Assembly: GCA_965240325.2 (NCBI GenBank)
Contig: OZ251223.1
Coordinates: forward strand, 4,402,001-4,466,000
Source of the DNA: Rebecca billardiae RCC1528
Taxonomy: Eukaryota; Protista; Haptophyta
Length of the DNA: 64,000 bases
Reading direction: 5' to 3'
The notes below the pieces were generated by a model. The model did not search any database, was not told the DNA's origin, and saw only the letters and a list, made by a program, of their open reading frames with translations. The position numbers and the translations under genes were made by a program. Shown here one piece after another: positions 2,609 to 32,562 of the stretch; positions within the stretch are counted from its first letter, which is position 1; each line of letters starts with the position of its first letter.

Positions 2609-3967
2609 GAGGTGCGAGGGCACCGGTGATCCGGTTCGCGCACTCGCCGCGCGTGCACGGGCAGCTGACACACCTCGATCAGGCTCGGCACGCGTTGCAG
2701 AGGCACGGCCAGCTCTGGGGACGTCACGCACCACCGTCGCCCGCGCAGCTCGTCCTCCTCGTAGAGTACCGTTCAGTTCCGAGGCGTAGCCCTCGCTCAG
2801 AGTCGACCGACGATGGACTCGGATCGTCGGCGCGCCTGCTCTCTCTCAATCAAGAGGAGTTCTGGGAGACCCCGGAAAGGCATGGCAAGGGCGGCGCGTG
2901 GTGAAGTCGAAGGCTCAGAGATCGATCAGTCCGGCATCAGGCGCCGCTGCCCCCGAGCTTGCGAGAGCCCGAACACAGGGCGGCGGCTGCGGCGCCGGCT
3001 CGCGGACAGGCGCCGGGGCCGCGCAAGGCCGCGCCGAGGCATCGACAGGGCGGCAGGGGCGGCGGGGGCGCGCGGAGTGAGCGGGGGCACGACGAACGCG
3101 ATGTCGACGGCAGTCGGGACCCGCCGCAGCCGCGCGCTCCAGGCGCCATTCGCCGCGCGCACCTGCCCATCGCCGTCCTCACCCGTCGGTCCTCGAGCCT
3201 CGTGCCCGTGGCTCGCCTCCAAACGCGGGCCGCCTCTGGTGGGCCGCCGGGCCACGCGCGCGCCCAACCAAGTCCGTTCGCGTCAGATAGTATTGAGATT
3301 CGCCGAGGTTGGCCCATCGGCTACTGACCCTTGCCTCGTCGGCTCCTGATACAGACACGGCGCGATTGAATAGTTGATTCAACTGATTCAAGGGACGTAC
3401 ATGGTCACATCGGTTCGCGGCAATCTGTATCTAGATACGTCATCGCTCCTTGGACCTTGCTGCAATCTCATTGGCCGAAAAAATCGCTTGTAACGGTTCG
3501 TTACGTTAGGGATCCTAAAGGGCGTGAAGTTTTTTGGACGGGCGTCACTCCACGCTTTACTATGAACTTGCCGTGGGCGCGACCTTTTTCGGCCGTGATG
3601 CATCGCTGCATCGGTTAGAGAGGGTCTCAACATTCGAAACTCGGTCTCCTCCAGCCATGAAAATCGTCCCCCGTCCCTTTTTTCTTGATCAAAGATCTTT
3701 TTGAAACGTTGTTCGGGCCCGCTGGTGCGGGCTCCACGCTGCGCGCTCCGCCCTGCACCGCGGGCCAGAAGCGCACGCGTGACGAGGACTGATGAGAGTG
3801 ATGAGGCGAGACGAATGGCGGCCGGCGGCAGAGTCGAAGAGCTGCGCGCGCGCGCCGCGTGCGCGTCGCCCACTGGCGGATACATAGCAGCCGCCTGCTG
3901 CCCTGCTGCGCATCATGGCTGCGTGCGGATGCACGCCGCAGCCCTGCTGCTAACCTCCGACTGCCGG

Positions 3968-12865: not shown

Positions 12866-15800
12866 ATGGCCACGCCGCTATGGCGCGGGCTGATCGGCTG
12901 GCTCCTCGTGGGGTATCGCGTGGTCGCAGCGCCCATGCCACCCGGGCCGGGCGACCTCGCTGTGATCGGCATCCACGCGGACGACCCGGACGAGGTGCTG
13001 CTGGTCGCCACGACGGATATTGCGCAGGGCACCACGTTCTACCTCACGGACAGGGGCTGGAAGGCGGACGGGACGTGGCGTGGGGGCGAGGGCACGCAGA
13101 CGTGGACCGTTGGCGCGCCGCTGGGCGCGGGCGCGGTCACCGAGCTCGCGCTGAGCGAGCTGCTCATCGCGGCGACGGGCGACGTGCTGTACGTGTACAC
13201 CGGCTCCGAGAGCGCGCCCGAGTTCATCTACGCCATCTCGATCAACGCGAACGCGTTCGATGCGGACGCGAGCTCGGCGCAGCAGGGCACGCTGCCCGAG
13301 AACCTCACGCTGGGCGTGAGCGCGGTCGCGCTGGGCAACGTGGACAACGGCGTGTACGGGGGCACGCGCAGCGGCACGCGCGCCGAGCTGCTCGCGGCCA
13401 TCTCGAACGCGGCGAACTGGCAGACGTCGAACGAGCGGCTGACCTTCGACAACGCGTCGTTCTACGTCGGTCCAGCGCCGCCTGCGCCGCCGCCGAGCCC
13501 GCCATTGAGCCCGCCGCCACCCGCGCCGCCGCCGAGCCCGCCACCGAGCCCGCCGCCACCTGCACCGCCGCCGAGCCCGCCTCCAACGAGCCCGCCGCCT
13601 GCGCCCCCGCCGAGCCCGCCGCCGAGCCCGGGGCCGGTCCCGCTCGCGCCGGGCGACCTGGCGGTGATCGGCATCCACGCGGACGACCCGGACGAGGTGC
13701 TGCTGGTCGCCACGACGGATATTGCGCAGGGCACCACGTTCTACCTCACGGACAGGGGCTGGAAGGCGGACGGGACGTGGCGTGGGGGCGAGGGCACGCA
13801 GACGTGGACCGTTGGCGCGCCGCTGGGCGCGGGCGCGGTCACCGAGCTCGCGCTGAGCGAGCTGCTCATCGCGGCGACGGGCGACGTGCTGTACGTGTAC
13901 ACCGGCTCCGAGAGCGCGCCCGAGTTCATCTACGCCATCTCGATCAACGCGAACGCGTTCGATGCGGACGCGAGCTCGGCGCAGCAGGGCACGCTGCCCG
14001 CGAACCTCACGCTGGGCGTGAGCGCGGTCGCGCTGGGCAACGTGGACAACGGCGTGTACGGGGGCACGCGCAGCGGCACGCGCGCCGAGCTGCTCGCGGC
14101 CATCTCGAACGCGGCGAACTGGCAGACGTCGAACGAGCGGCTGACCTTCGACAACGCGTCGTTCTACGTCGGTCCAGCGCCGCCTGCGCCGCCGCCAATG
14201 AGCCCGCCGCCACCCACGCCGCCGCCGAGCCTGCCACCGAGCCCACCACCGAGCCCGCCGCCGAGCCCGCCGCCACCAAGCCCACCGCCGAGCCCGCCGC
14301 CGAGCCCGCCGCCGCGCCCGCCGCCGAGCCCACCACCTAGTCCGCCACCGACGCCACCACCACCAACGGCACCACCGAGCCCACCGCCATCACCGCCACC
14401 AAGCCCGCCTCCGAGCCCGCCTCCGAGCCCACCGCCTGCGCCACCGCCGCCGAGCCTGCCGCCGAGCCCGCCACCATCGCCTCCGCCCACGCCACCGCCA
14501 CCGAGCCCGCCGCCAAGCCCGCCGCCGAGCCCACCGCCTGCGCCACCGCCACCGAGCCTGCCGCCGAGCCCGCCACCATCGCCTCCGCCCACGCCACCGC
14601 CGCCGAGCCCGCCACCGAGCCCGCCTCCGAGCCCGCCGCCATCACCGCCGCCACCGAGCCCGCCTCCGAGCCCGCCACCATCGCCTCCGCCCACGCCACC
14701 GCCACCGAGCCCGCCACCGAGCCCGCCTCCGAGCCCGCCGCCATCACCGCCGCCACCGAGCCCGCCTCCGAGCCCGCCACCATCGCCTCCGCCCACGCCA
14801 CCGCCACCGAGCCCGCCACCGAGCCCGCCTCCGAGCCCGCCGCCATCACCGCCGCCACCGAGCCCGCCTCCGAGCCCGCCACCATCGCCTCCGCCCACGC
14901 CACCGCGACCGAGCCCGCCACCGAGCCCGCCTCCGAGCCCGCCGCCATCACCGCCGCCACCAAGCCCGCCACCGAGCCCGCCTCCGAGCCGGCCGCCATC
15001 ACCGCCGCCACCGAGCCCGCCTCCGAGCCCGCCACCATCGCCTCCGCCCACGCCACCGCCACCGAGCCCGCCACCGAGCCCGCCTCCGAGCCCGCCGCCA
15101 TCACCGCCGCCACCGAGCCCGCCTCCGCGCCCGCCGCCATCGCCGCCGCCCACGCCACCGCCACCGACACCACCTCCGAGCCCACCGCCGTCGCCTCCGC
15201 CCAAGCCACCGCCACCGAGCCCGCCTCCGAGCCCGCCGCCATCGCCTCCGCCCACGTCACCGCCACCGAGCCCGCCACCGAGCCCGCCTCCGAGCCCTCC
15301 GCCATCACCGCCGCCACCGAGCCCGCCTCCGCGCCCGCCGCCATCGCCGCCGCCCACGCCACCGCCACCGACACCACCTCCGAGCCCACCGCCGTCGCCT
15401 CCGCCCAAGCCACCGCCACCGAGCCTGCCTCCGAGCCCGCCACCTGCCCCGCCGCCACCGAGCCCGCCGCCCAGCCCGCCTCCTTCGCCGCCACCGGCGC
15501 CACCGCCACCAAGCCCGCCTCCGAGTCGGCCGCCATCGCCACCGCCCACGCCACCGCCGCCGAGCCCTCCGCCGAGCCCGCCACCATCGCCTCCGCCCAC
15601 GCCACCGCCACCGAGCCCGCCTCCGAGCCCACCGCCTGCGCCACCGCCGCCGAGCCTGCCGCCGAGCCCGCCACCATCGCCTCCGCCCACGCCACCGCCA
15701 CCGAGCCCGCCACCGAGCCCGCCTCCGAGCCCGCCGCCATCACCGCCGCCACCGAGCCCGCCTCCGCGCCCGTCGCCATCGCCGCCGCCCACGCCACCGC

Positions 15801-18800
15801 CACCGACACCACCTCCGAGCCCACCGCCGTCGCCTCCGCCCAAGCCACCGCCACCGAGCCCGCCTCCGAGCCCGCCGCCATCGCCTCCGCCCACGTCACC
15901 GCCACCGAGCCCGCCACCGAGCCCGCCTCCAAGCCCTCCGCCATCACCGCCGCCACCGAGCCCGCCTCCGCGCCCGCCGCCATCGCCGCCGCCCACGCCA
16001 CCGCCACCGACACCACCTCCGAGCCCACCGCCGTCGCCTCCGCCCAAGCCACCGCCACCGAGCCTGCCTCCGAGCCCGCCACCTGCACCGCCGCCACCGA
16101 GCCCGCCGCCCAGCCCGCCTCCTTCGCCGCCACCGGCGCCACCGCCACCAAGCCCGCCTCCGAGCCCGCCGCCATCGCCTCCGCCCACGCCACCGCCACC
16201 GAGCCCTCCGCCGAGCCCGCCTCCGAGCCTGCCGCCATCACCGCCGCCCACGCCACCGCCGCCGAGCCCGCCTCCGAGCCCGCCGCCATCGCCTCCACCC
16301 GCGCCACCGCCACCGACACCACCTCCGAGCCCACCGCCGTCGCCTCCGCCCAAGCCACCGCCACCGGGCCTGCCTCCGAGCCCGCCTCCGAGCCCGCTGC
16401 CATCACCGCCGCCACCGAGCCCGCCTCCGCGCCCGCCGCCATCGCCTCCGCCCACGCCACCGCCACTGACACCACCTCCGAGCCCACCGCCGTCGCCTCC
16501 GCCCAAGCCACCGCCACCGAGCCTGCCTCCGAGCCCGCCTCCGAGCCCGCCACCTGCGCCGCCGCCACCGAGCCCGCCGCCCAGCCCGCCTCCTTCGCCG
16601 CCACCGGCGCCACCGCCACCAAGCCCGCCTCCGAGCCCGCCGCCATCGCCCCCGCCCACGCCACCGCCACCGAGCCCTCCGCCGAGCCCGCCTCCGAGCG
16701 TGCCGCCATCACCGCCGCCCACGCCACCGCCGCCGAGCCCGCCTCCGAGCCCGCCGCCATCGCCTCCGCCCACGCCACCGCCACCGAGCCGGCCACCGAG
16801 CCCGCCTCCGAGCCCGCTGCCATCACCGCCGCCACCGAGCCCGCTTCCGCGCCCGCCGCCATCGCCTCCGCCCACGCCACCGCCACCGACACCACCTCCG
16901 AGCCCACCGCCGTCGCTTCCGCCCAAGCCACCGCCACCGAGCCTGCCTCCGAGCCCGCCTCCGAGCCCGCCACCTGCGCCGCCGCCACCGAGCCCGCCGC
17001 CCAGCCCGCCTCCTTCGTCGCCACCGGCGCCACCGCCACCAAGCCCGCCTCCGAGCCCGCCGCCATCGCCTCCGCCCACGCCACCGCCACCGAGCCCGCC
17101 ACCGAGCCCGCCTCCGAGCCCGCTGCCATCACCGCCGCCACCGAGCCCGCCTCCGCGCCCGCCGCCATCGCCTCCGCCCACGCCACCGCCACCGAGCCCG
17201 CCACCGAGCCCGCCTCCGAGCCCGCTGCCATCACCGCCGCCACCGAGCCCGCCTCCGCGCCCGCCGCCATCGCCTCCGCCCACGCCACCGCCACCGACAC
17301 CACCTCCGAGCCCACCGCCGTCGCTTCCGCCCAAGCCACCGCCACCGAGCCTGCCTCCGAGCCCGCCTCCGAGCCCGCCACCTGCGCCGCCGCCACCGAG
17401 CCCGCCGCCCAGCCCGCCTCCTTCGCCGCCACCGGCGCCACCGCCACCAAGCCCGCCTCCGAGCCCGCCGCCATCGCCTCCGCCCACGCCACCGCCACCG
17501 AGCCCTCCGCCGAGCCCGCCTCCGAGCCTGCCGCCATCACCGCCGCCACCGAGCCCGCCTCCGAAGCCGCCACCATCGCCGCCGCCCACGCCACCGCCAC
17601 CGAGCCCGCCACCGAGCCCGTCACCGAGCCCGCGTCCGAGCCCGCCACTATCGCCGCCGCCCAAGCCACCGCCACCGAGCCCGCCGTCGAGCCCGCCGCC
17701 GAGCCCGCCACCAGCGCCGCCGCCACCGAGCCCGCCGCCCAGCCCGCCTCCTTCGCCGCCACCTGCGCCACCGCCACCGAGCCCACCGCCGAGCCCGCCT
17801 CCTTCGCCGCCACCTGTGCCGCCGCCACCGAGCCCGCCGCCGAGCCCGCCTCCTTCGCCGCCACCTGCGCCGCCGCCACCGAGCCCGCCGCCAAGCCCGC
17901 CTCCTTCGCCGCCACCTGCGCCGCCGCAGCCAAGCACGCCTCCGAGCCCGCCGCCATCGCCTCCGCCCACGCCACCGCCACCGAGCCCTCCGCCGAGCCC
18001 GCCTCCGAGCCTGCCGCCATCACCGCCGCCACCGAGCCCGCCTCCGAAGCCGCCACCATCGCCGCCGCCCACGCCACCGCCACCGAGCCCGCCACCGAGC
18101 CCGTCACCGAGCCCGCGTCCGAGCCCGCCACTATCGCCGCCGCCCAAGCCACCGCCACCGAGCCCGCCGCCGAGCCCGCCGCCGAGCCCGCCACCAGCGC
18201 CGCCGCCACCGAGCCCGCCGCCCAGCCCGCCTCCTTCGCCGCCACCTGCGCCACCGCCACCGAGCCCGCCGCCGAGCCCGCCTCCTTCGCCGCCACCTGT
18301 GCCGCCGCCACCGAGCCCGCCGCCGAGCCCGCCTCCTTCGCCGCCACCTGCGCCGCCGCCGCCGAGCCCGCCGCCGAGCCCGCCCCCTTCGCCGCCACCT
18401 GCGCCGCCGCCACCGAGCCCGCCGCCGAGCCCGCCTCCTTCGCCGCCACCTGCGCCGCCGCCACCGAGCCCGCCGCCGAGCCCGCCTCCTTCGCCGCCAC
18501 CTGCGCCGCCGCCACCGAGCCCGCCGCCCAGCCCGCTTCCTTCGCCGCCACCTGCGCCGCCGCCACCGAGCCCGCCGCCGAGCCCGCCTCCTTCGCCGCC
18601 ACCTGCGCTGCCGCCACCGAGCCCGCCGCCGAGCCCGCCTCCTTCGCTGCCACCTGCGCCGCCGCCACCGAGCCCGCCGCCGAGCCCGCCTCCTTCGCCG
18701 CCACCTGCGCTGCCGCCACCGAGCCCGCCGCCGAGCCCGCCTCCTTCGCCGCCACCTGCGCCGCCGCCACCGAGCCCGCCGCCGAGCCCGCCTCCTTCGC

Positions 18801-21800
18801 CGCCACCTGCGCCGCCGCCACCGAGCCCGCCGCCGAGCCCGCCTCCTTCGCCGCCACCTGCGCCGCCGCCACCGAGCCCGCCGCCCAGCCCGCCTCCTTC
18901 GCCGCCACCTGCGCCGCCGCCACCGAGCCCGCCGCCGAGCCCGCCTCCTTCGCCGCCACCTGCACTGCCGCCACCGAGCCCGCCGCCCAGCCCGCCTCCG
19001 AGCCCGCCACCTGCGCCGCCGCCACCGAGCCCGCCGCCGAGCCCGCCTCCTTCGCCGCCACCTGCGCTGCCGCCACCGAGCCCGCCGCCGAGCCCGCCTC
19101 CTTCGCCGCCACCTGCACCGCCGCCACCGAGCCCGCCGCCCAGCCCGCCTCTTGCGCCGCCACCTGCGCCGCCGCCACCGAGCCCGCCGCCGAGCCCGCC
19201 TCCTTCGCCGCCACCTGCGCCGCCGCCACCGAGCCCGCCGCCCAGCCCGCCTCCGAGCCCGCCACCTGCGCCGCCGCCACCGAGCCCGCCGCCGAGCCCG
19301 CCTCCTTCGCCGCCACCTGCGCTGCCGCCACCGAGCCCGCCGCCGAGCCCGCCTCCTTCGCCGCCACCTGCACTGCCGCCACCGAGCCCGCCGCCCAGCC
19401 CGCCTCTTGCGCCGCCACCTGCGCCGCCGCCACCGAGCCCGCCTCCGAGCCCGCCTCCTTCGCCGCCACCTGCGCCGCCGCCACCGAGCCCGCCGCCCAG
19501 CCCGCCTCCGAGCCCGCCACCTGCGCCGCCGCCACCGAGCCCGCCGCCGAGCCCGCCTCCTTCGCCGCCACCTGCGCCGTCGCCACCGAGCCCGCCGCCC
19601 AGCCCGCCTCCGAGCCCGCCACCTGCGCCGCCGCCACCGAGCCCGCCGCCGAGCCCGCCTCCTTCGCCGCCACCTGCGCTGCCGCCACCGAGCCCGCCGC
19701 CGAGCCCGCCTCCTTCGCCGCCACCTGCACTGCCGCCACCGAGCCCGCCGCCCAGCCCGCCTCTTGCGCCGCCACGTGCGCCGGCGCCACCGAGCCCGCC
19801 GCCGAGCCCGCCTCCTTCGCCGCCACCTGCGCCGCCGCCACCGAGCCCGCCGCCCAGCCCGCCTCCGAGCCCGCCACCTGCGCCGCCGCCACCGAGCCCG
19901 CCGCCCAGCCCGCCTCCTTCGCCGCCACCTGCGCCGTCGCCTTCGAGCCCGCCGCCGAGCCCGCCGCCGAGCCCGCCTCCTTCGCCGCCACCTGCGCTGC
20001 CGCCACCGAGCCCGCCGCCCAGCCCGCCTCCTTCGCCGCCACCTGCGCCGCCGCCACCGAGCCCGCCGCCGAGCCCGCCTCCTTCGCCGCCACCTGCACT
20101 GCCGCCACCGAGCCCGCCGCCGAGCCCGCCTCCTTCGCCGCCACCTGCGCTGCCGCCACCGAGCCCGCCGCCGAGCCCGCCTCCTTCGCCGCCACCTGCG
20201 CAGCCGCCACCGAGCCCGCCGCCGAGCCCGCCTCCTTCGCCGCCACCTGCGCCGCCGCCACCGAGCCCGCCGCCGAGCCCACCTCCTTCGCCGTCACCTG
20301 CGCCGCCGCCACCGAGCCCGCCGCCGAGCCCGCCGCCGAGCCCGCCTCCTTCGCCGCCACCTGCGCCGTCGCCTTCGAGCCCGCCGCCGAGCCCGCCGCC
20401 GAGCCCGCCTCCTTCGCCGCCACCTGCGCTGCCGCCACCGAGCCCGCCGCCCAGCCCGCCTCCTTCGCCGCCACCTGCGCCGCCGCCACCGAGCCCGCCG
20501 CCGAGCCCGCCTCCTTCGCCGCCACCTGCACTGCCGCCACCGAGCCCGCCGCCGAGCCCGCCTCCTTCGCCGCCACCTGCGCTGCCGCCACCGAGCCCGC
20601 CGCCGAGCCCGCCTCCTTCGCCGCCACCTGCGCTGCCGCCACCGAGCCCGCCGCCGAGCCCGCCTCCTTCGCCGCCACCTGCGCAGCCGCCACCGAGCCC
20701 GCCGCCGAGCCCGCCTCCTTCGCCGCCACCTGCGCCGCCGCCACCGAGCCCGCCGCCGAGCCCACCTCCTTCGCCGTCACCTGCGCCGCCGCCACCGAGC
20801 CCGCCGCCGAGCCCGCCGCCGAGCCCGCCTCCTTCGCCGCCACCTGCGCTGCCGCCACCGAGCCCGCCGCCGAGCCCGCCTCCTTCGCCGCCACCTGCGC
20901 TGCCGCCACCGAGCCCGCCGCCGAGCCCGCCTCCTTCGCCGCCACCTGCGCCGCCGCCACCGAGCCCGCCGCCCAGCCCGCCTCCTGCGCCGCCACCTGC
21001 GCCGCCGCCACCGAGCCCGCCGCCGAGCCCGCCTCCTTCGCCGCCACCTGCGCCGCCGCCACCCAGCCCGCCGCCCAGCCCGCCTCCGAGCCCACCGCCT
21101 GCGCCATCGCCACCGATCCCGCCTCCAAGCCCGCCGCCGTCGCCGCCGCCCACGCCACCAACGCCGGGCCCGCCACCAAGCCCGCCGCCCAAGCCGCCGC
21201 CACCGAGCCCGCCGCCGAGCCCGCCTCCGAGCCCGCCGCCATCACAGCCGCCCACGCCACTGCCACCGCGCCCGCCGCCGAGCCCGCTGCCGAGCCAGCC
21301 GCCGAGTCCGCCGCCATCGCCGTCGCCCACGCCACCGCAACTGAGCTCGCCACCGAGCCCGCCGCCGACCCCGCCACCGCTCCCGCTGTTCAGCCCTCCG
21401 CCGAGCCCGCCGCCATCGCCGCCGCGTGTGTCCCCCAGGCCTGCACCGCCCACGCCTCCTCCGCGCGCGCCGCCGCCGCCGCTGCCCTCGGCCCCGCCGA
21501 GCCCGCCGCCGTCCGGGCCGCCCGCTTCGCCGCCGCCGCCGCCGCTCCCCGGCCCGGCGCTGCTCTCCGCCGCCTTCGACGCGCAGGCCTCGGGCCTCGT
21601 CCTCACGTTCGACGGCCCGACCGACCGCGCGGGCATGGCCGCGGGCCTGGCGCCGTGCACGCGCGTGCTCGACGGCGCGACGCTCGGCCTGCTGCGCGGC
21701 GGCGGCGGCGGCGGGGCGGGCGGCGCGGCGGAGCCGCTCTGCTACTGGCAGGACGACGCGCGGCTGGTCGCGCAGCTGCGCGCCGCCTCGCTCGTGCGGC

Positions 21801-24800
21801 CGGGCGCGCGCGTCGGCGTGCGCGCGGCCGCGGTCGCGCACGTGGCGTGCGCGGCGCGGCACGCGTCCGCGCCGTGCGGCGCGCACGCGGCCGGTGCGGC
21901 GGGGAGCGTGCTCATCCCGGCGGGCGCGCCGTGCGGCGTGGGCGTGGCGTGCGCCGCGCCGGTCGCGAGCGTCTCGGGCGCGCGCGCCGTCTCCTCCTGC
22001 GCCGACGCCTCGCTGCGCCTCGTCGGCGGCGCGTCGAGCGGCGGCGGCGCGCTGCCGCTGGCGTACGCGTGGGCGGTGGCTCCGCTGGCTGAAGACCCGC
22101 CGCCACGCGCGGCGCTGGCGGCGCTGGCGGGCGCGCTGGCGGCGCTGCCGCCGACGCAGGCGGTGCTCGAGCTCGACGCGGCCGCGCTCGGCGCCGAGGG
22201 CGGCTTCGTCTTCTCCCTCGTCCTCACCTCCGCGCTCGGCGTCCGCTCCGCGCCCGCGAGCGTGGCGGTGGCGCGCGCGCCCGCGAGCGCGCCGCGCCTC
22301 GAGCTGGACGCGTCCGCGCAGGGCGCGCTCACGCGGCCGGACGCGGTGACGGCGGTGCTGGCGCGCGCGGAGGTGTCGGCGTGCTGGCCCGCGGGGCTCT
22401 CCGCGCGCGTGCTGTGGAGCTGGGCGGTGCTCAACGTCTCGCGGCACGACGACGCGGGCGCCGCCGCGCGCGCGGACGGCGCGCACCCGCCGGCGCCTCC
22501 GCGCGTGCCCGCGCTCGGCGGCGCGCGCGGCGCCACGCTGCTGCTGCCGCCGTGGTCGCTGAGCGCGGGGCACACGTACACGCTGCGCGCGACGGCGGCG
22601 ATGGAGGCGTCGGCCGAGCACAGCGCGAGCGCCGACGTCGCGCTGCGCGTGCCCACGCTGCCGCTCCGCGCCGCGCTCGCGCCCGCCGCCCTGCGCACGC
22701 ACGTGCGCACCGCCGTCAGCTTTGACGCCTCCGCGTCCGCAGACCCGAACGAGCCGCGCACGGCGGCGGGGGAAGGGCTGGCGTACGCGTGGGCGGTGTC
22801 GCGCGCCTCGGACGGCGCGCGCGTCTGGCCGCTGGGCGCGCACAACGCCACCGCCGCCTCGCCCTTCCTCACGCTGCCCGCGCGCGCGCTGCCCGCCGGC
22901 CGCTACGACGTGAGCGTGCGCGTGTGGAGCGCGGCGGGGGCATCGGGCGCGCGCCCGGCCGCGGCGGCGAGCGCGGCGCTCGAGCTGCTCGGCGAGGAGG
23001 CGGAGGCGGGCGGTGCGCTGCCCGCGCTCGGGCTGGTGCCGCTGCCCGCGCGCAAGGTGGCGCCCACGTGGGAGCGGCGCAGCGAGCGGCTCGCGCTGCG
23101 CGCAACCATCGGCGGCGCGGACGGCGCGGCCGCGGACGCGGACGCTGCCGCGGCCGCGGAGGGCGCGCACGCCTTCGAGTGGCGCGCGTTTGTGCTGGGC
23201 GCGGGCGGCGCGCGCTCGGCGGCGGCGGGGCTGGAGCTGGGCGACACGGCGCGCGTGACGACGAGCGGCGCGCACGGCGCGCTGCTCGCGCTGCGCTCCG
23301 GCGCGCTCGCCCCAGGCGCCACGTACGCGTTCGAGGTCAGCGCGCGCGCGCTCGGCGCTGGGGCCGGCGGCGCGGCGGCGGTCGCGGAGCTGGTCGTGGT
23401 GGTCAACCGGCCGCCGCACGGCGGCGCGCTGGCGGTGGCGCCGGCGGAGGGCGTGGCGGCGCTCACGCACTTTGCGCTGCACGCGGCCGGCTGGAGCGAC
23501 GACGACGCGGACGACCTGCCGCTCTCCTACGCGTTTGGGCACGCGCCCGCGACGGCGCGGCGCGCGGACGGCGCCGCCGCCGACGACGATGACGCCGATT
23601 CCGACGACGACGACGCGGCGGCTGCTGGCGCGTCGCTCGGCCGCGCGCAGCTCTCGCCGCTGGCGTCCGCGCTGCTGCCCGCGGGCAACCGCACGCTGAG
23701 CGTGCGCGTGCGCGACGCGCTGGGCGCGAGCGCGCGCGCGCACGCGGCGGTGCGCGTGCGCTCGCTGCGCGCCGACGCCGCCGCCCCGGGTGCGCCGCTC
23801 GGCGCCGCCGACGCGGCGGTGGCGGCCGCGCTCGCGCGCGCGCGCGCCGCGCTCGGCGCGGGCGACGGCGCGCGCGCGCTGCAGGCCGCGGTGGCGCTCG
23901 CCGCCGAGCTGCTCGGCGGCGGCGGCGGGCGCAACGGCACGGCCAGCGGCGGCGAGGCGGCGGCGGCGGCGGAGGCGGAGGCGGCGGCGGCGGCGGAGGC
24001 GGAGGCGGAGGCGGTGCGCTCGCTGCTCGAGCTCACCGCCGCCGCGGCGCTCGACTCGGCGGAGGCGCGCGCGCACGCGGCGGGCGCGCTCGGCGCGGTG
24101 GTGGCGCGCGCGGCGAGCGCGCGTGCGCTCGACGGGCCATCGCGCGCCGCCGCGCTCGCGCAGGCGGCCGCGCTCGCGCGCGCGGCCGCGGGCACCGGCG
24201 TGGGCGCGGCCGAGCGCGCCGCGCTGCTCGGCGCGCTCGACGGCGCGCTCGCGCAGCCCGACGCGCCGCTCGCGCCCGCCGACGCGGCGGCGGTCGGGTC
24301 GGCGGCCGCGGCGGCGGCGGACGCGCTCGCGCGCGCGCTGCTCGCGGGCGCGCTGCCTGGCGAGGGGCCGGCGACGGCGGTGGGCTGGGCGCTCAACGTG
24401 TCGGCGGTGCGACTGGCCCCGGCGGCGGTGCGCAACGCTAGCCTGCTCGGCGCGGGCGGCGCGGGCTCCGTGACGCTGCCGCCCTCCGCGCTCGACGCGG
24501 CCGATCTCCGCGGCAGCGCGGTGGACGTGCTGCTGTGGAGCGTCGGCCACGCGGCCGCCGCGCGCGCGGCCGCGCCCGGCGTGGGCGCTGCTGCCCAGAG
24601 CCACAACGGCTCGAGCGCCGCCGTTGGCGCGGGCGCGGCCACGGCTGTCTTCTCGGTCAGCCTCGCCTCGGCGGACAGCGGGGAGACGCTGGCCGTCGCC
24701 GGCCTCGCGCAGCCCATCACGCTCGGGCTGCCACCGCGCGCACCCGAGGCGGGCGCGGGCGCGGACGCGGCAGCGGGCTCGGCGTCGGGGTGGGCGGGCG

Positions 24801-26276
24801 GCGGCGGCGGCGAGGGCGGCGGCGGCGAGGGCGGCGCGCCGGGCGGCGGTGTGCTGGCGCCAGGGCTGGAGCAAGGGCTGGAGTGCCGCTGGTGGGACGA
24901 GGCGCGCGCGGCGTGGGTGCCCGACGGCTGCGCGGCCGTCCCGCCGCCCGCCGCCGCCCCCGCCGCCGCGTCCGCCCGCCTCCACTGCGCGTGCTCGCAC
25001 CTCACGCAGTTTGCCGGCTTTGCCATCCCGCCCTCTGCGGCCGCGGCGCGCGAGGAGGCGGCTGCGCTCCGCCCCAACGCCCTCAGCGCGGACGACGCCC
25101 TGGGCGCGGTGCTGGCGCCCGCGCACGAGCGGGACCCTGCGCTGCACGCGCTCGTGGGCGCGCTCGCGGCCGCGAGCCTGCTCTCCGTCTGCGCCCTCGG
25201 CTGCCGAGACCGGCGGCGCGCGCGGCTGCGCGCCTCCTCCGTCGGCGCGGCGGACGGTGCCGGAGCCGCGGGCGGCGGCGGCGCGGGCGGCGCGCCCCGC
25301 CGGCCGCCGCTTGGCTCCAAGCGCCCGGCCGCCGCGCCTTCCGAGCTCGGCGACGACGTCTCGCCCGCGCTGCTCGCCGCGCTCGCCGAGCTGCACGCCG
25401 CGTGCGAGATCCAGCGGTACGTCCGCGGGCTGCTCGCGCGCAGGGCGGCCGCGGACGACGCCGCCTCGTCGGCCGCGCCGGGCGGCGGCGGCGCGGGGAG
25501 CGCGCGCGGCGGCGGAGGCGGCGGCGGCGGCGGCGGCGGCGGCAAGCACTGGCTGCGCGCGCGCTGGGCGGAGCGCGGCCTGAGCGGGCGCTCGGCGCTC
25601 GCGCTCGCGCGCGCGCTCGGCGCGCGCGCGGGCGCGGAGCACTCCCTCCTCTGGGCCCTCGCCTCGCGCCACGACGCCGACGCCGACGCGGCCGAGTGCG
25701 GCTCCGGCGCGCGGCCGCTGCGGCCGTCCGAGGCGGCGGCGATCTTCTGGGCGGCGGCCGCGCTCGGCCTCGCGCTGTCGTGCGCGCAGTACGACGACGC
25801 GGCGGAGGGCGCGCCGCCTAGCCTGGTGCGCGAGGCGCTGGCCGCGTGCAGCACCGCGCTGCTCTCCGCGCCGCTGCTGCTCGCCGCCAAGGGCCTCTTC
25901 AGCAGCGGCCGCGCGCGCGACACGCGCGCGCGCGCCGCGCCGGCCGCGTGCGCGCGCGCGCTCGACCGGCCGGGCCGAGCTCAGCTCGTCTTCAGCGCGG
26001 CGGTGGTCGCGCGCGCCGAGGTGCTGCTCGGGCGCGCGGGCAGCGGCGGCGCGGCGCGGCGCGGCGCGGAGCCGGCGCGCGCGACGCGCGTGGGCTGGGA
26101 GGCGCTGCCGCCGCGCCGAGACACGCCGCCGCCGCCGCCGCGCGCCGAGCAGCGCGCGCGCCGCAGCGGCCGCGGCGGCACCGCGCGGCGGCGCGCTGCT
26201 GAGCTGCGCGCGGCCGAGGCGGCGGCCGCGGCGGGCGCGCGCGACGCCGGGCGGCGCGCGCGCGATCGCGCCGCGC

Positions 26277-26309
<33 letters not shown>

Positions 26310-26573
26310 AGTGCGCGCGCGCCGCGCCGCTCACCGCGGCGGCGCTGGCCGCGCACACGGCGCGCGCGGACGCGGAGGGCGGCGGCGGCGCGCTCGCGCC
26401 GCCGCGGGCGGCGGCGGCGTGGACTCGCGCGCGCGTGCCGCCGCCCTCGCCGGGCGCCGCCGTGCAGCCCACCGGCGCCGCGCGCGCCGCCGCGCCGCGG
26501 CTGCCGCCCAGCCTCGCGCCGCACGCACCGTCCGCGCGCAGCCGCAGCGAGGGCGAGGGCGGCAGCGACGCGG

Positions 26574-26627
<54 letters not shown>

Positions 26628-28237
26628 GCCCGGCGCGCTCGCCGCCCTCGCCGGTGTGCCGCCCGGCGGGGCTCGGCGGCGAGGGCGCGCTCGCGCGGCT
26701 CTCGCTCGCGCGGCTGCAGCCGCCCTCGCCCTCGCCCCTCTCGCCGTGCCGCGTGCTCAACCTCCCCGCCTCGCCGCGCGACGGCGGCGGCGCGGCGCGC
26801 AGCCCAGCGGCGCGCGCGAGCGCGCTCGGCAGCGGCGCGCGCGCGGGCGGCGGCGGCAGCGCGCGCGAGAGCGGCGCCCATGGCGGCAGCCAGCCGTGCA
26901 GCCGGCCGTCGTGCCGCGGCTCGACGGGCGCCGGCTCGAGCGTCTCGCTCGCCTGGACCTCGCCGCGCGCCGCCTCGACGCCGCCCAGCTCGGCCGCCGT
27001 CAGCGCCGCCGGCCGCGCGCCGCCGCTTGAGGCGCGCGCCGGCGGCGCGGGCGGCGCGGGCGGCGCGGGCGGCGCGGCGTGGCTGCCACCGCCGCCCGCC
27101 GAGTCGGCCGGCGGCTCGATGCCCGCGTCGCCGCCCTGGCCGGCGCCGCCGCGGGCCGCCGACCGCGTCGTGCCGTGGCGCGCGCAGCCCGAGCGCGCGC
27201 GCCCCGCCGCCGCCGCCGCCGCCGCGCGCGGCCCGCGCGGCGCGGCGCCGCTGCCGCCGCGCGCGCCCGCGCCCGCGGCCACGGCCGCGGACGCTCGGCG
27301 CCGCTCGATCTCGGCGCCGCTCGGCCGGTGCGTGCCGTCGGCCAGCTCGCGCTTCGAGGCGCCGAGCGCGTCGCAGCTGCGCGCCGCGGGCATGCCGCCG
27401 TCCGCGCCGCCCTCGCCCGGCGCGCGCGCCGCGCGGCCGGCGGGGTGCGGAGGGTGCGGAGGAGCGCTCGGCGCGGCGGTGGCGGCGGCCGCGGACGGCG
27501 CGGCGCGCGGCGGCGACGACGAGGCCGCGTCCGTCGCCGCCGCCTCCGAGCTCACCGCCGCGACGCTCGCCAGCCTCCCCGCCCTCTCCGCGCCGCACGC
27601 GCACGGCCTCGACTCCGCCTCCGCCGCGCTCCTCCGCTACCGCTTCGTCCTCGCGGACCCGACGCTCTCGGGCGCGGTGCCGCGCGCGCAAGCCGAGGCG
27701 TTCCTCTCAGAGCTCGGCTTTGGCCGCGGCCTCGCGAGGCGCGCGTGCGCGGCGCTCGTCGGCGCGGACGGCGCCGTCTCGTTCGACGCGCTGTGCGGGT
27801 GGTACGCGGCGCGCGTCGACGCGGGCGCGCGCACGCACGCGGCGCGCGCCGCGCGCGCCGCGCGCTGGCGCGCGTCGGCGTGCGGCCGGCGCGCGGCGCG
27901 CGGTGCGCGGTGCTTTGGCGCGCGCACGCGCACGGCGCTGGCGTGGGCGCTGTGCGCGGGCACGCTCTTCGCGTGCTGCCTCTCCGCGCTCGCGTACGGC
28001 TACCGCTTCGGCCGCGCCAAGACGCGGCGCATGCTGCTCAGCTGGGGCCTCGCCGAGGTGCAGCGGCTCGCGCTGCTCGAGCCGGCGCTCACGCTCGGCC
28101 GCGCGGGCGCGGCGCGCGCCGCGCGGCGCACGGTGCACTTTGGCGCGTCCGTGGGCGACGCGATCAACCACGTGCTCGCGTCGGGCACCGGCCGCTGCCT
28201 GCAGGCCGTGCTCCGCGGCGCGCGCGGCGGGGCGTAG
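12866..28237 (+). CDS. Giant polycystin-1/REJ-like GPS receptor with extensin-like Ser-Pro stalk (5123 aa, single exon)
   Basis: N-terminal signal peptide, two near-identical ~175-aa globular domains and a ~2,450-aa SPn tract. Then a REJ-like region (FDASASADP, VVVNRPPHGGALAVAPAEGVAALTHF, DLPLSYAF) and GPS motif CRWWDE..W..DGC...CACSHL/TQF at ~24880-25015. Then a TM, IQ motif IQRYVRGLLARR and an EF-hand-like segment, ending in PKD1-like TMs YGYRFGRAKTRRMLLSW...LLEP. Confidence 0.85.
14171..21553 (+). repeat. ~7.4-kb coding minisatellite encoding (SPPP)n extensin-like tract; 51-nt/17-aa dominant unit in the distal half
   Basis: Unit ccgagcccgccgccgagcccgcctccttcgccgccacctgcgccgccgcca, e.g. 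at 18413 and 18464. Higher-order duplications, e.g. marker ccgaagccgccacc at 17561 and 18044. Confidence 0.97.
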
Positions 28238-28564
28238 CGCGGGCCGACGGTCCGGTCGGAGTCGGAGTCAGCTGTTCGGGCCGCGGATCGGCCCATCACG
28301 TCATGCGACATCGGCGCGCGTCCCGCGTCTGTAGTTTGTGACGGCTGCGCTGCTGCGTGCTGACGATGATCGATGCTACTGCTGATGATGCGCGCATACG
28401 CATGTCAAGGACGAGCGCAGCTGATGCGCGCGCGCTGCGCGTGGCGGTATATCGCACGCGCACTGCCGTGATGCATGCTGCGCTGATCCTCCAGACGACG
28501 CGATAAAAAGCGCATGCCGCCATGCTGAACGACAACGACAAAAAACGCGCGGCCGGGCAAAATG

Positions 28565-28637
28565 AGGTCCTACTTGGATTCGAACCAAGGTCTGGAGATT
28601 CAGAGTCTCCCGTGCTGACCAACTACACTATAAGACC
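28565..28637 (-). tRNA. trnQ-CUG: tRNA-Gln (anticodon CTG)
   Basis: Minus strand reads GGTCTTATAGTGTAGTTGGTCAGCACGGGAGACTCTGAATCTCCAGACCTTGGTTCGAATCCAAGTAGGACCT. It has an acceptor stem, anticodon stem GGAGA/TCTCC and T-loop GTTCGAATC. No encoded CCA; a TTTT Pol III terminator follows 2 nt later. Confidence 0.97.
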
Positions 28638-28981
28638 GTCACGTAGCGACGATAGGCGTGTTTTTTGGGTACTTGAACATACGCGCAGGTGATGACTCCT
28701 TGGGGTCAAACCCGGGCCGCTGTTGGGCTGCTGGTGAACAACGCCAACGGCGACGAGTCGGCGCCGCGGCCATCGGCTTAAGATGACACTGCTTGAGTGC
28801 TGTCGTATAGCTATAGCTAGTTACATGGTCGCGTAGTGATTGAGTCGTAAGTCAAATAAGCCCAGCACGACAGGCACTCGCCGCGCGCGGCGTGAAGCTA
28901 CGCCGAGCAGCAGGCTGACGCGGAGCAGCCGCCATCCGGCCCGATCCGCGCGGATCACGTGCTCAGCAGTATACGTGCTCA

Positions 28982-29490
28982 TCACGCCGGCGCCGCGCCC
29001 ACGCGCGCGAGCGCGCGCGCGCAGCCGTCGAGCCTCGCGTGCAGCTGCGCGCACGCGCTCGCGTACGACGCGCCCAGCCGCTCGGCGAGCTCCGTGCGCG
29101 CCTCCTCGGCGCAGCCCTCGATGGGCGGCTGGGCCGCGCAGGTTGGCAGCACGAGCAGCGGCAGCGGCGTCGCGGCCTCGCCCGCCGCCGCCGCCGGTCC
29201 GCACGCGGCGAGCGGCGCGAGCGCAGCGCACAGCCGCTCGGCCGCGGCGGCGGCGCGGCGCGCCGCCTCGCGCAGCGGCGCGCGGCACGCCGCGGCCAGC
29301 TCGGCATCCTCCGCCGCGGCGGCGGCGCCCCCCTTGCCCTTAGCGCCGCCTGGCCTGCACGGCGCGCGCGCGCGCACGGCCTCGTCCCACGCGTGCAGCG
29401 CCAGACTCGCAGCGGGCAGCTGCACGCGCGCCAGCTCGGACGCGTGGGCGAGCGCGTGCGCGCCCAGCAGCGCGGCCGGCTCGGCAGCGC

Positions 29491-29537
<47 letters not shown>

Positions 29538-29723
29538 GCGGCGGCGAGTGCGGCCGCCGCGGCCGCGTCGCTGGGCGCAAACATGGCGCCCACGTGCTCA
29601 GCGGCGCGCTCGACCGCCGCCGCCCAGTCGCCGAGCTGCGCGCCCAGCGCGCCCAGCGCCGCCTCCGTGGGCTCCAGCGCCGCGGCCGCCCCACCGCCGC
29701 CGCCCGCACCGCCCGCCGCCGCC

Positions 29724-29771
<48 letters not shown>

Positions 29772-31510
29772 GCCGCCTGGGCGTGCGCCGCCCGCCAGCG
29801 GCGCTCGTCGAGGAGCGAGGCAGCGGCGCGCGTGGCGCCGAGCGCGAGGAGGGCGAGATCGGCGTGCGCGAACGCCGGCGCCTCCGCCTCCGCCTCCGCG
29901 GCGACCAGCGCCTCCGCCGCCGCCTCCGCCGCCGCGCCGTCCGCGCCCATCGCGGCCAGCAGCGCGCGCGCGTGCAGCCAGCCCGCCGCGAGCGCGTGCG
30001 CGCACGCGCGGTGCACCGCGGCCGCGGCGGGCTTGCGCGCGCTCGAGTCGAAGACGGAGGTGTCGAGGTTGGAGACGAGGGCGGAGGCGGAGCGCGCGGC
30101 GGCGCGCGCGTCCGCGCCGCTCGCGCCGCCCGTGCGCTCCACTGCGCGGGGCGGCGCGCGCGCGGAGGCGGGGCGGGGCGGCGCGGCGCGGCGCGACAGG
30201 GCCGCGCGGTCGGCGGCGGTGCGCGCGGCGCGCGCGGCGGCGCGCGCGGCGCCGCGCGCGGCGCGGAGCGGTGCTTGCGCGCGCCGCGCGCGCACCAAGC
30301 CGCAGCCCGGCGAGCGCCGCCCGCGCGGCGCGCACGTCCGCGGGCGCCGCGGCCGCGTCGAGCTGCGCCACGCACAGCTCGCACCACGCGCGCCACCTCG
30401 AGCCGCGCAGCCGCGCGCGCAGCGCCCCCAGCTGCAGCGCCTGCGCGGGGCGGCCATGCTTGTACGGCAGCACCGCGCTGTCAGCCAGCTCGCGCGCGCC
30501 CTCGGCATGCAACGCGAGCGAGTCGGACGCGGCGTCGCGCGCGGCGTCGAGCTCGCCGAGCGCGAGCAGCGCGGGCAGCAGCACGTACCCGAGGCTCTCC
30601 CGCTGCAGCTTGCGCGTGCCCAGCTCCGCGCACGCCTCGGCCACGAGCGAGGCCGCGCCCAGCCGCGCGCACAGCGCCGCGCGCCACAGCTTGAGGCACG
30701 AGTTGGCGGCGGAGCGGCGGGAGGCGGCGCGCAGCAGCAGCAGCGCGCGCGCGGCCGCGCGCGCCTCGCGCGCGGCCGCGCGCGGCCGCGCCTCGCGCGG
30801 CGGCGCGCGGAGCAGCGCGGCCAGCGCGGCCAGCGGGCACGCGCCGCGCGCCCACGCCTGCGCCGCGCTCAGCGCGAGCCCGTCCGCGGGCTGCAGCGCC
30901 GTGGGCTCGAGCGCGCACCCGAGGGGCAGCGCCGCGGCGTACGCGCCGGCGAGGGCGGCGGCGCGCGCGTGCGCGAGGCTGGGCGCGCAGCCGTCGTCGA
31001 CGCCGAGCGCGGAGCGCCACTGCGCCGCCGTGATCGCGCGCTGCGCCGCGCCCACGCTCGCGCCCGCGCCGTCCGCGCCGCCGTCCGCGCCGCCGTCCGC
31101 GCCGCCGAGCGCGCGCGCGCACAGCGCGGCGCGCGCGGCGGGCGCGCGCAGCAGCGCCGCCGCTGCGCGCAGGTGCGCACGCACGTCGCTGCCGGCGCAC
31201 GGGCGCTCGGCGAAGCGCGTGTAGTACTCGCGCAGCGCGTCGGCCAGCGCGTCGCACTCCGCGCCGAGCGCGCCCGCGCCACCCTCCGCGCCGCCGCCGC
31301 CGCCCTCCGCCGAGCCGGCCGCGTCCGCCGCGGCCGCGGCCGCGCGCAGCAGCCGCAGCCGAACGTCGACGGCGCCGAGCTGCGGCGCGCGGCCGCGCGG
31401 CTGGCGCTCGGCGAGGGTGCTGAGCACGCCGAGCGCGCGCGCGGCGCGCGCGTCGAGGTCGGCCGGCGCCGCCCACGCGCCCGCGCCCTCCTCCTCGTCC
31501 GCGTCCGCGT

Positions 31511-31551
<41 letters not shown>

Positions 31552-32562
31552 GCGTCGGCAGGGCCGTCGTCCGCGGCCGCGGCCGCGGCCGCGGCGGCGC
31601 TCTCAACCGCGCGCGCGCTCGGCGGCAGGCCGAGGGCGGAGAGGTAGCGGACGAGGCCGAGCCAGTCCTCCTCGCCCGCGCCCGCCGAGAGCAGCGCCTC
31701 CTCGCGCAGCGCCACCGCCTCCTCCGCGCGCCCGAGCGCCGCGACGCTCGCCGCGCGCACGTCCGCGCGCTCGGCTGCGGAGAGGTGGCGCGCGCCCAGC
31801 GACGAGCTGGCGAGGGCGAGCGCGCGCGCCGCGCCCGGCTCGCCGCCCTGCGCGCGCGCGACGGCGAGGGCGAGGCGGAGCTCGGCGAGCGAGGCCGGCC
31901 CGCCCGCCTTGTCCATCATCGCGCCCGCGAGCTGCACCAGCTTGGCGCCCAGCGCGCCGTCCGCCGCCGCGCGCGCCTGCAGCAGCACGCTCGCCAGGGC
32001 CCACATCTGGTAGCCGCGCGCGCGCTCGGCCGAGCCCGAGGCGGCGGCGTGGCGCGCGAGCCGGACGGCGACGGCCTGCTGCTTCGCGTACTGGAACACG
32101 CGCGCGTGCGCGAAGAACAGGTGCGACGCCAGCGTCTCCGACGCCCAGCCGTCCGCGCCGACCGCGATCTCGTGGATCTCGACCACCGCCTCGAGCTGGC
32201 CCGCCGCGCGGTACAGCATGGAGAGGGCGTGCATCAGGCCCTCCTCGACGGGCGCGCGGATGCCCGCGCGCGCGGCCGCGCCGAGCGCGAGCGCCTCCTC
32301 CGCGCGCCCCGTGCGCAGCAGCGCCATACCCTTGAGCGCCTGCGCGGCGGCGGCGCGCGAGCGAGCGAGCGGCGCGCCTCGCCGTCGGCCGCGCGCCCGG
32401 CTGGTTGTGTGCGCGCGCGCGCGCGGCGGCGGCGCGGCCCACCTGGAAGATGGGCACCACGCCCTTCTTCAGCACGCCGTCGCACAGCTTGAGCGCCTGC
32501 TTGTAGTTGGCCGCGTCGAGCGCGTCGTACACCTGGTTGAGCTTCGCGTCGGAGGGCGCCAT
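28982..32562 (-). CDS. NAA25: N-terminal acetyltransferase B auxiliary subunit (NAA25/MDM20-like); exons 32562-32443, 32339-30296, 30141-28982
   Basis: N-terminus KLNQVYDALDAANYKQALKLCDGVLKK..FQ/ALKGMALLRTGRAEEAL is typical of NAA25. Also YYTRFAERPC..DVRAHL and LGTRKLQRESLGYV. Both GT-AG introns (32442-32340 and 30295-30142) restore frame. PolyQ (CAG)n near 29726-29770. Confidence 0.85.

Follow-up and report, generated by a model that had tools for sequence, protein, structure and literature searches.

Known systems and the locus under study

Receptors with GAIN domains and polycystins have been studied almost only in animals, where mechanosensing is still debated. In the polycystin-1 family (PKD1, PKD1L1-3 and PKDREJ) and in the suREJ proteins of sea urchins, a large ectodomain ends in a REJ domain, which is followed by a GAIN domain with its GPS motif and an H-L/T site ahead of the first transmembrane helix (TM1). 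The same arrangement is encoded by a 15.4-kb gene of the haptophyte Rebecca billardiae RCC1528, located on the plus strand of the stretch of DNA analyzed here, a window of 64,000 nucleotides (assembly GCA_965240325.2, contig OZ251223.1, positions 4,402,001 to 4,466,000). In the predicted surface protein of 5,123 residues, a rod that would be hundreds of nanometres long stands on the REJ-GAIN module, which is followed by a very small membrane core with conserved IQ and EF-hand elements. We consider it probable, without great assurance, that the gene belongs to a large family of stalked REJ-GAIN surface proteins that act as force-sensing receptors.

An initial annotation, made from the sequence, had called the protein polycystin-1-like, a label that suits its REJ-GAIN half. 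In the polycystin-1 family, however, TM1 is followed by a PLAT domain, in whose place an IQ helix is found here, and the membrane part has 11 helices, including a PKD2-like set of six at the C-terminus, whereas this protein has four (five in its paralogues) and nothing of the PKD_channel part. The ectodomain carries none of the PKD repeats, leucine-rich repeats, WSC or C-type lectin domains of that family and is instead an extensin-like rod, and an EF-hand pair is placed in the cytosol. The label does not extend to the membrane part, which has no detectable kinship to the solved PKD1 and PKD2 chains. Membership of the polycystin-1 family was rejected on the missing PLAT domain and the missing 11-helix channel-like body and, by its domain content, the protein is a REJ-GAIN protein and not a polycystin-1. 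REJ proteins without a channel are already known, given that suREJ1 and suREJ2 have one or two membrane helices.

Adhesion G-protein-coupled receptors (GPCRs) such as latrophilin, BAI and GPR126 also have a long adhesive ectodomain before a self-cutting GAIN domain, with a tethered peptide ahead of TM1. They differ in their seven-transmembrane (7TM) secretin-like bundle, which was not found here with Pfam, and the rod of the haptophyte protein would be hundreds of nanometres longer than the animal ectodomains. Given that the bundle is missing, there is no obvious coupling to a G protein. Membership of this class was ruled out by the lack of a Pfam 7tm match and the presence of only four hydrophobic segments. 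Outside animals, both Dictyostelium and Tetrahymena have GAIN domains (PMC3321182).

By analogy, the closest documented design, a hydroxyproline (Hyp) rod on a polycystin-type anchor, is that of Mstax. This axial protein of the Chlamydomonas mastigonemes has approximately 8,000 residues, with a Ser-Hyp segment, lectin domains and a hydroxyproline stem of ~660 nm, and its polycystin-type (PKD2-like) membrane region is proposed to sit with three PKD2 protomers (bioRxiv 10.1101/2024.12.24.630281). Both proteins are giant chains with binding domains at the far end, an extended stem, and a polycystin-type region with a cytosolic part at the base, and their lengths are similar. Nonetheless, the anchor of Mstax corresponds to the channel half of a polycystin, whereas that of the haptophyte protein corresponds to the receptor half (REJ-GAIN) and has no channel. 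The stem of Mstax follows the pattern Hyp11-(X2Hyp)n-Hyp12 and is sheathed by Mst1, while the stalk described here is plain Ser-Pro3, like the polyproline-II part of Mst1, with no Pro11-12 runs and no Mstax-type Hyp11/12 repeats. The heads differ as well, being lectin domains in the green alga and sandwiches resembling a lamin-tail domain (LTD) in the haptophyte.

Extensins, the Chlamydomonas sexual agglutinins SAG1/SAD1 (Ferris 2001, as cited in PMC10290126) and GP1 are hydroxyproline-rich glycoprotein (HRGP) rods. The stalk shares with plant extensins and other such rods the Ser-Pro3-4 repeats that are expected to form glycosylated polyproline-II rods, and the protein shares with the agglutinins the layout of a head on a shaft, although agglutinin shafts are shorter than the 2,462 residues found here. 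The extensin cross-linking motifs (YXY, VYK) are missing and, with not a single Tyr in its sequence, the stalk cannot form the isodityrosine cross-links of extensins. Unlike these wall or peripherally held proteins, the protein is predicted to be integral to the membrane, with a GAIN domain at its base.

Gene structure and encoded domains

The frame is open at exactly 12866-28237, and this region is one real, uninterrupted, intron-less coding exon with the start and stop that the initial annotation had given to a single-exon protein of 5,123 residues. Given that the G+C content of the region is 80-87%, and that the opposite strand and the other frames also hold open reading frames (ORFs) of 2,000-2,500 residues, an open frame alone is little proof. 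The single coding exon is accepted on three observations, the first of them decisive. The G+C content at third codon positions (GC3) is 0.94-0.98 in the ORF frame in every 600-nucleotide block outside the Ser-Pro repeat, and is flat at ~0.6 in the sequence before the ATG and in that after the stop; windows of 120 nucleotides across the ORF show no intron-like dip and no frame shift; and 16 paralogues in the same genome are open from before the REJ domain and end at the same conserved C-terminal motif. Read-through of an intron in the last 1,000 residues was ruled out by a GC3 of 0.96-0.98 and by the conservation of the C-terminal module at 61 places. The downstream ORF at 28959-32492 was likewise rejected as a source of extra exons, given the intervening tRNA-Gln gene, the flat composition and the paralogues that stop at the same motif.

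The order of elements that the initial annotation had read from the sequence, namely a signal peptide, two globular heads, a rod of SPn repeats, a REJ-like region, a GPS with an intact HL/T site and a membrane part without PLAT or PKD_channel domains, was recovered (Table 1). The N-terminus looks like a signal peptide, with Arg7 followed by a 10-residue hydrophobic core (Kyte-Doolittle hydropathy, KD, of 1.76) and by V-V-A ahead of the likely cut. Pfam returned both REJ and GPS. The REJ model PF02010 matched residues 3224-3315 and 3459-3639 with an expectation value (E) of 3.3e-27 and 95.7 bits (cut-off 25), and the GPS motif scored 23.1 bits against a cut-off of 22.5. In the scan of this protein and three paralogues, no match to PLAT (PF01477), PKD_channel (PF08016) or 7tm was obtained.

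The GPS motif lies inside a full GAIN fold. The AlphaFold2 (AF2) model of residues 3641-4125 (17 paralogues) has a mean predicted local distance difference test (pLDDT) of 69.6 and contains 7 helices, a beta-sandwich and a long membrane helix. When it was compared with the PDB using Foldseek, the ten best matches were all GAIN domains of adhesion GPCRs (E 3.8e-7 to 9e-4), and the family profile of the region also matches adhesion-GPCR GPS motifs by sequence (E 1e-6). The motif C-x-C-x-H-L-T-x-F, at residues 4041-4049, is kept in this gene and in all 16 paralogues, and four Cys, two Trp and the H, L and T of the GPS region are invariant in the 17 sequences. The GAIN domain would be expected to cleave the protein at H-L/T, 45 residues ahead of TM1. 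The peptide that would follow the cut (T-x-F-A-G...P-P-S) resembles its counterpart in PKD1. In PKD1, the REJ domain is required for cleavage, according to Qian 2002 as cited in PMC3321182.

The initial annotation had placed five helices in the membrane, as TM1, TM2/3 and TM4/5. The first four are hydrophobic (hydrophobic stretches at residues 4095-4113, 4289-4307, 4323-4345 and 5024-5042), but no hydrophobic helix is found at the position of TM5, where the best 19-residue KD is 0.92. The counterpart of TM5 is polar and Arg-rich in this protein, whereas in distant paralogues a fifth hydrophobic helix (KD 1.8-2.4) follows an E-E-P motif. This member therefore is, as judged from hydropathy, a protein with four membrane helices. 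The ~530-residue loop between TM3 and TM4 is coding (GC3 0.97-0.98), although it aligns poorly and varies in length among paralogues, and the most conserved block of the C-terminal module lies after TM4.

The IQ-like motif lies where it had been annotated. Its sequence, I-Q-R-Y-V-R-G-L-L-A-R, fits the consensus [ILV]Q-x3-[RK]G-x3-[RK], and the Q, R-G and R of the core Q-x3-R-G-x3-R never vary among the 17 paralogues, even though identity in the region falls as low as 28-36%. The family profile of this region matches the IQ of myosin-5A (E 0.0024), radial spoke protein 23 and Sp17. It is thus a probable IQ motif and a candidate for binding calmodulin, although the Pfam score of the segment stays under the cut-off.

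The annotated EF-hand-like pair derives from a genuine calmodulin-like pair. It aligns column by column with the canonical pair of ten more distant paralogues, whose loops read D-x-D-x-[SN]-G-x-[VIM]-D-x-x-E and D-x-D-x-[DN]-x-x-I-x-[FY]-x-E. Three of these distant paralogues that were scanned match EF-hand_7 with E of 1e-10 to 1e-11, and the family profile matches calmodulin at E of 1e-19 to 1e-25. The pair of this member, in contrast, is unmatched by Pfam. Its loops read D-P-T-L-S-G-A-V-P-R-A-Q and L-V-G-A-D-G-A-V-S-F-D-A, and they depart from the canonical ligands (positions 1, 3, 5 and a Glu at position 12), position 12 being Q in loop 1 and A in loop 2. Given that both loops lack calcium ligands, the pair is a true EF-hand homologue that very probably no longer binds calcium, and the calcium coupling that the initial annotation had envisaged becomes doubtful for this member. 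Loss of the ligands is common to the gene and its six closest relatives, with Q or A at position 12 of loop 1, A at position 12 of loop 2, and L and G at positions 1 and 3 of loop 2. Because it is common to seven genes at 61-71% identity, the degenerate state is, on this comparison, maintained and not accidental.

Relatives of the membrane and C-terminal part outside this genome were found neither in word searches, which were swamped by low-complexity sequence and limited in length, nor in a metagenome scan, and a feature search of the Atlas with the same part gave only generic EF-hands; these results carry little weight.

The stalk comprises 2,462 residues, in agreement with the ~2,450 residues first proposed, and consists of 73% Pro and 18% Ser, with 358 SP3, 17 SP4 and 512 X-P3/4 units. 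The reach of ~0.75 µm that had been calculated from it is correct arithmetic as an upper bound (2,462 residues at 0.31 nm each); the rod could be up to ~0.76 µm long, likewise as an upper bound, and would be shorter if it were kinked at non-Pro positions. A solved glycan-coated tetrapeptide fibril shows the same rise, 12.4 Å per 4 residues (PMC11725842). Tandem Repeats Finder (TRF) detected periods of 12, 51 and 153 nucleotides in the DNA of the stalk, where the longest exact repeat is 295 bp. Because the repeat units have diverged (81% matches), a simple assembly expansion is disfavored, which does not in itself prove the length. The genome holds at least 54 matches of prolyl-4-hydroxylase type, and an ExAD-like GT47 arabinosyltransferase has been reported in haptophytes (PMC5371791). 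One of the hydroxylase-type matches (2OG-FeII_Oxy_3, 4022-4696, minus strand, two pieces in one ORF of 644 residues) lies ~8 kb upstream of the gene; given the number of such matches in the genome, this proximity may be chance.

The two heads (12944-13465 and 13646-14167) differ from each other at 4 of 522 nucleotides and 2 of 174 residues, and the genome search gives them 98% identity. The AF2 model of the head (pLDDT 77.6, predicted template-modelling (TM) score 0.82) is a sandwich of seven to eight strands with short C-terminal helices. No Pfam model matched the domain, and LTD (PF00932) was unmatched even at E up to 1. Nonetheless, the domain belongs to a very large unnamed family: a profile built from 11 copies of the head found 4,064 proteins at E <=0.001 and 389 at <=1e-30 among 1.84 billion representatives. 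These are mostly bacterial surface proteins, and they often hold several copies each. The predicted structures of the Atlas give TM-scores of 0.84-0.87 with surface proteins of Bacteroidota, Planctomycetota and Verrucomicrobiota, 0.76 with one haptophyte cluster, and 0.58-0.59 with lamin-tail-domain clusters, including ExeM/NucH nucleases. Foldseek found no match to the head in the PDB at E <=0.001, and the best solved structures are a DUF4876 protein (Z 6.3), generic immunoglobulin-like (Ig-like) domains and the Ig domain of lamin B1 (Z 4.6).

The head shares an Ig-like sandwich with LTD proteins, but the likeness is in shape only; membership of the LTD family was ruled out by the missing Pfam match, and the closest shapes are the unnamed bacterial clusters. 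The relatives of the head nevertheless keep similar company. Among the 62 that were scanned, approximately one third carry extracellular nucleases, with Endonuclease_1 in 10, Exo_endo_phos in 7 (Exo_endo_phos_3 in 3) and Endonuclease_NS in 3; another 6 matches are to LTD, and 9 of the relatives end in a type-IX secretion tail. The sole match of a word search with the head was a public, algal-looking fragment of 248 residues (P0001, 46% identity), in which the last part of an Endonuclease I domain is joined through a Ser-Pro linker to the head domain. Given this layout, the link between head and nuclease also exists in a eukaryote-type sequence. The gene described here, in contrast to those proteins, has no nuclease domain. 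Since the relatives of the head associate with three unrelated nuclease families, our best guess, by analogy, is that the heads would bind extracellular DNA or another polyanionic polymer, or a surface glycan.

Table 1. Features of the receptor gene, with positions numbered from the first letter of the window.
Feature	Residues	Nucleotides	Strand	Basis or remark
Whole coding sequence, one exon		12866..28237	+	5,123 codons + stop; open frame, GC3, shared C-terminal end motif
Probable signal peptide	1-22	12866..12931	+	Arg7, hydrophobic core, V-V-A before A-P; read from sequence
Head domain 1, Ig-like/LTD-like beta-sandwich	27-200	12944..13465	+	AF2 model, profile, shape matches; unnamed family
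Ser/Ala-Pro linker between heads	201-258	13466..13639	+	TRF 39-nucleotide repeat at 13476-13630; P-rich windows at residues 198-264
Head domain 2, near-identical copy of head 1	259-434	13640..14167	+	Sequence comparison
Ser-Pro3/4 stalk, extensin-like, no Tyr	435-2898	14168..21559	+	Composition, repeat counts, TRF
Cys-bearing pre-REJ region	2899-3223	21560..22534	+	Sequence
REJ domain	3224-3639	22535..23782	+	Pfam PF02010
GAIN domain: helical subdomain, beta-sandwich, GPS motif	3645-4049	23798..25012	+	AF2, Foldseek, profile, Pfam
H-L-T, putative autoproteolysis site	4045-4047	24998..25006	+	Motif, conservation
TM1	4092-4114	25139..25207	+	19-residue KD 2.15; modeled as long helix
IQ-like motif between TM1 and TM2, predicted cytosolic	4178-4193	25397..25444	+	Conservation, profile
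TM2	4289-4309	25730..25792	+	19-residue KD 1.67; F-W motif invariant
TM3	4323-4345	25832..25900	+	19-residue KD 1.61; conserved in paralogues
Low-complexity cytosolic loop, TM3 to TM4	4370-4905	25973..27580	+	Ala/Gly/Arg/Pro/Ser-rich
Degenerate (pseudo) EF-hand pair	4920-4984	27623..27817	+	Aligns with canonical paralogue pairs
TM4	5023-5045	27932..28000	+	19-residue KD 1.96
Conserved C-terminal tail: F-G...T-R...S-W..A-E.Q.L..E-P block, non-hydrophobic TM5 counterpart, end motif		28001..28234	+	

A family of stalked REJ-GAIN genes

The gene is not unique in its genome. The Pfam REJ model gives 103 matches at ~90 loci in the 72-Mb genome, nearly all of them in open frames of 2,000-21,000 residues, and long stalks occur across the whole family. 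A search with the last 224 residues of the protein gave 61 places, each of them a few kb beyond a match to REJ in the downstream direction. All 16 paralogues that were compared share one order, namely REJ, GAIN with H-L-T, TM1, IQ, TM2-TM3, a variable loop, the EF pair, TM4(-TM5) and the end motif. PLAT is found at only two loci of the genome, neither of them near a REJ gene, and PKD_channel domains are found at some 25-30 other loci. Given the shared order and these separate locations, the lack of PLAT and of the channel half is, by genome comparison, a property of the whole family.

Within the family, this member has lost none of the 23 residues that are invariant in the C-terminal module, nor any of the 35 in the GAIN region, and shows only five private departures, similar to other members. 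As it has retained all of the invariant residues of the C-terminal module, it is, by this measure, not a decayed copy.

The head occurs in two other REJ-GAIN genes of the same genome, on contig 19 (as two tandem copies) and on contig 1, as well as in a few shorter frames. The six closest relatives of the chassis do not carry it (12 of 12 candidates scored) and, for this reason, at least one exchange of heads has taken place on this chassis. The heads of the gene are ~55% identical in protein sequence to the two on contig 19, which likewise form a nearly identical tandem pair; the presence of a near-identical pair within each gene suggests gene conversion or independent recent duplication.

Other members, and one locus of channel type, lie elsewhere in the genome. 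On contig 19, at about 1573818-1631899, four REJ-GAIN genes spaced ~17.6 kb apart, with near-identical REJ scores, form a tandem array. On contig 3, the same contig as the window, a member in an ORF of 7,769 residues lies at 4328475-4333931, ~70 kb before it. A single PKD_channel match on contig 16 (881490-881921) falls in an ORF of 6,448 residues, which may encode a giant protein carrying the channel half.

Proposed force sensing and the alternatives

If the proteins are force-sensing receptors, they could work as follows. The signal peptide would send the N-terminus out of the cell via the secretory path, where prolyl 4-hydroxylases, followed by arabinosylation, would turn the Ser-Pro3 segment into a stiff polyproline-II rod with the two Ig-like/lamin-tail-like binding domains at its tip. 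The cut at H-L/T would leave the head, rod, REJ and GAIN domains held non-covalently on a membrane fragment that begins with the peptide T-Q-F-A-G and is predicted to cross the membrane four times. Once the heads have bound something, tension on the rod would put the GAIN cap under strain or detach it and expose this peptide, as in adhesion GPCRs, and the small membrane core would change its state in response. That state would then be read out in the cytosol by the IQ helix and by the EF pair, which resembles a lobe of calmodulin. Although placed in different cytosolic loops, the two may bind each other, in a calcium-dependent manner in most paralogues and a calcium-independent manner here. 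Binding of IQ motifs by dead EF-hands has a precedent in the essential light chains of myosin. Alternatively, the EF pair of this member may leave the IQ helix free for soluble calmodulin.

Several results weigh against this interpretation. Among solved structures, the head has no relative with a known function, its best match being the DUF4876 protein, and the role of LTD in nucleases such as ExeM is itself unsettled (PMC6085458). The confidence of the GAIN model is middling, with the pLDDT given above and TM-scores of 0.25-0.36 by query, and the GPS motif is barely above the Pfam cut-off, while the IQ motif, at 16 bits, is under its cut-off of 20.3. Profiles of the membrane part match no solved receptor or channel, including any PKD1 or PKD2 chain. 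With four helices, the conserved tail would be placed outside the cell, unlike that of the five-helix paralogues, which is placed inside, unless the counterpart of TM5 is amphipathic or re-entrant. Finally, the ratio of nonsynonymous to synonymous substitution rates (dN/dS) against the six closest paralogues is 0.58-0.63 for the GAIN domain and 0.76-0.89 for the C-terminal module, values obtained with a simple method and inflated by a near-saturated GC3; relaxed constraint may contribute, but at a GC3 of 97% these values are partly an artefact.

The strongest of the competing explanations, to which we give a minor but appreciable weight, is that of a passive structural fibril. The protein would then be an axial or anchoring part of a surface hair, a flagellar hair or the cell coat, in the manner of Mstax, with the REJ-GAIN module and the helices serving only to root it in the membrane and the heads holding other components of the coat. 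A component of a flagellar hair had been among the initial suggestions, and Mstax, with its ~8,000 residues, ~660-nm stem and polycystin-type membrane region, is a clear precedent for it; for the haptophyte protein such a location would be by analogy only. No part of the protein is larger than the stalk, a varied glycocalyx could be built from ~90 paralogues that differ in their heads, and the calcium sites and TM5 have been lost in this member, all of which fits a fibril. What a mere anchor makes hard to explain is the invariance of the cleavage triad, the GAIN cysteines and the IQ core, together with an EF pair that is canonical in most paralogues. The likeness to Mstax also stops short of a PKD2-like region and of its characteristic stem repeats.

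A second explanation, which we regard as improbable, is that the receptor is a subunit of a polycystin-type channel, pairing with a separately encoded PKD2-like protein and gating it as PKD1 does with PKD2. Partners would be available at the separate PKD_channel loci mentioned above, REJ and GAIN make up a PKD1-type ectodomain, and Mstax is itself proposed to sit with PKD2 protomers. However, PKD1 and Mstax join the tetramer through channel-like helices of their own, which this protein does not have; nor does it have a PLAT domain or any sequence link between its membrane part and PKD1 or PKD2 chains, and no linkage to a channel gene was seen within the 64-kb window.

It is very improbable that the gene is a young, drifting or unexpressed paralogue, open mainly because stop codons are rare at 83% G+C, or that the stalk owes its length to the assembly, since the long ORFs in other frames and on the opposite strand, dN/dS values of 0.6-0.9, degenerate EF loops and TM5, and heads 99% identical through very recent duplication or conversion are outweighed by a GC3 that, across 8 kb outside the repeat, is high in a single frame and drops sharply where that frame starts and stops, by the retained invariant residues with private changes as few as in other members, by an EF/TM5 state shared with the six closest relatives and hence maintained, and by diverged stalk units in a family where stalks are long throughout.

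The force-sensing reading can be taken further, to a proposal that we regard as speculative and rather unlikely. The family would have a built-in calcium switch, in which the EF pair of the third cytosolic loop clamps the IQ helix of the first loop in cis and couples force sensing by the GAIN domain to the membrane core, with neither a channel nor a G protein involved. In this member the switch would be blind to calcium, and its nuclease-associated heads would be fishing for extracellular DNA or prey surfaces at distances of up to ~0.76 µm. If true, this would be a type of receptor described in no organism.

The architecture is striking, and it has a precedent in principle in Mstax, whose combination of a hydroxyproline rod with a polycystin-type anchor would be extended from green algae to a haptophyte. 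A search of the available literature found no paper reporting REJ domains from haptophytes, and the family, as known from sequences and predicted folds, is apparently undescribed. The heads would give a first eukaryotic receptor context to their family of bacterial surface proteins and nucleases. If expressed, the ~90 versions with interchangeable heads would offer a naturally occurring set of receptors that transmit force in a single-celled alga, and the family could reveal what a REJ-GAIN module does without a channel or a 7TM bundle.

Two features lie downstream of the gene in the window. The tRNA-Gln gene (anticodon CTG), at 28564-28637 on the minus strand, lies 330 nucleotides past the stop codon of the receptor. 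Beyond it, an ATG-started ORF of 909 residues (29598-32327, minus strand) runs towards the receptor gene. It begins with ~650 residues that look like a protein of helical repeats; the last third is rich in Arg and Gly and looks out of frame, and for this reason an intron or a change of frame is likely within it.

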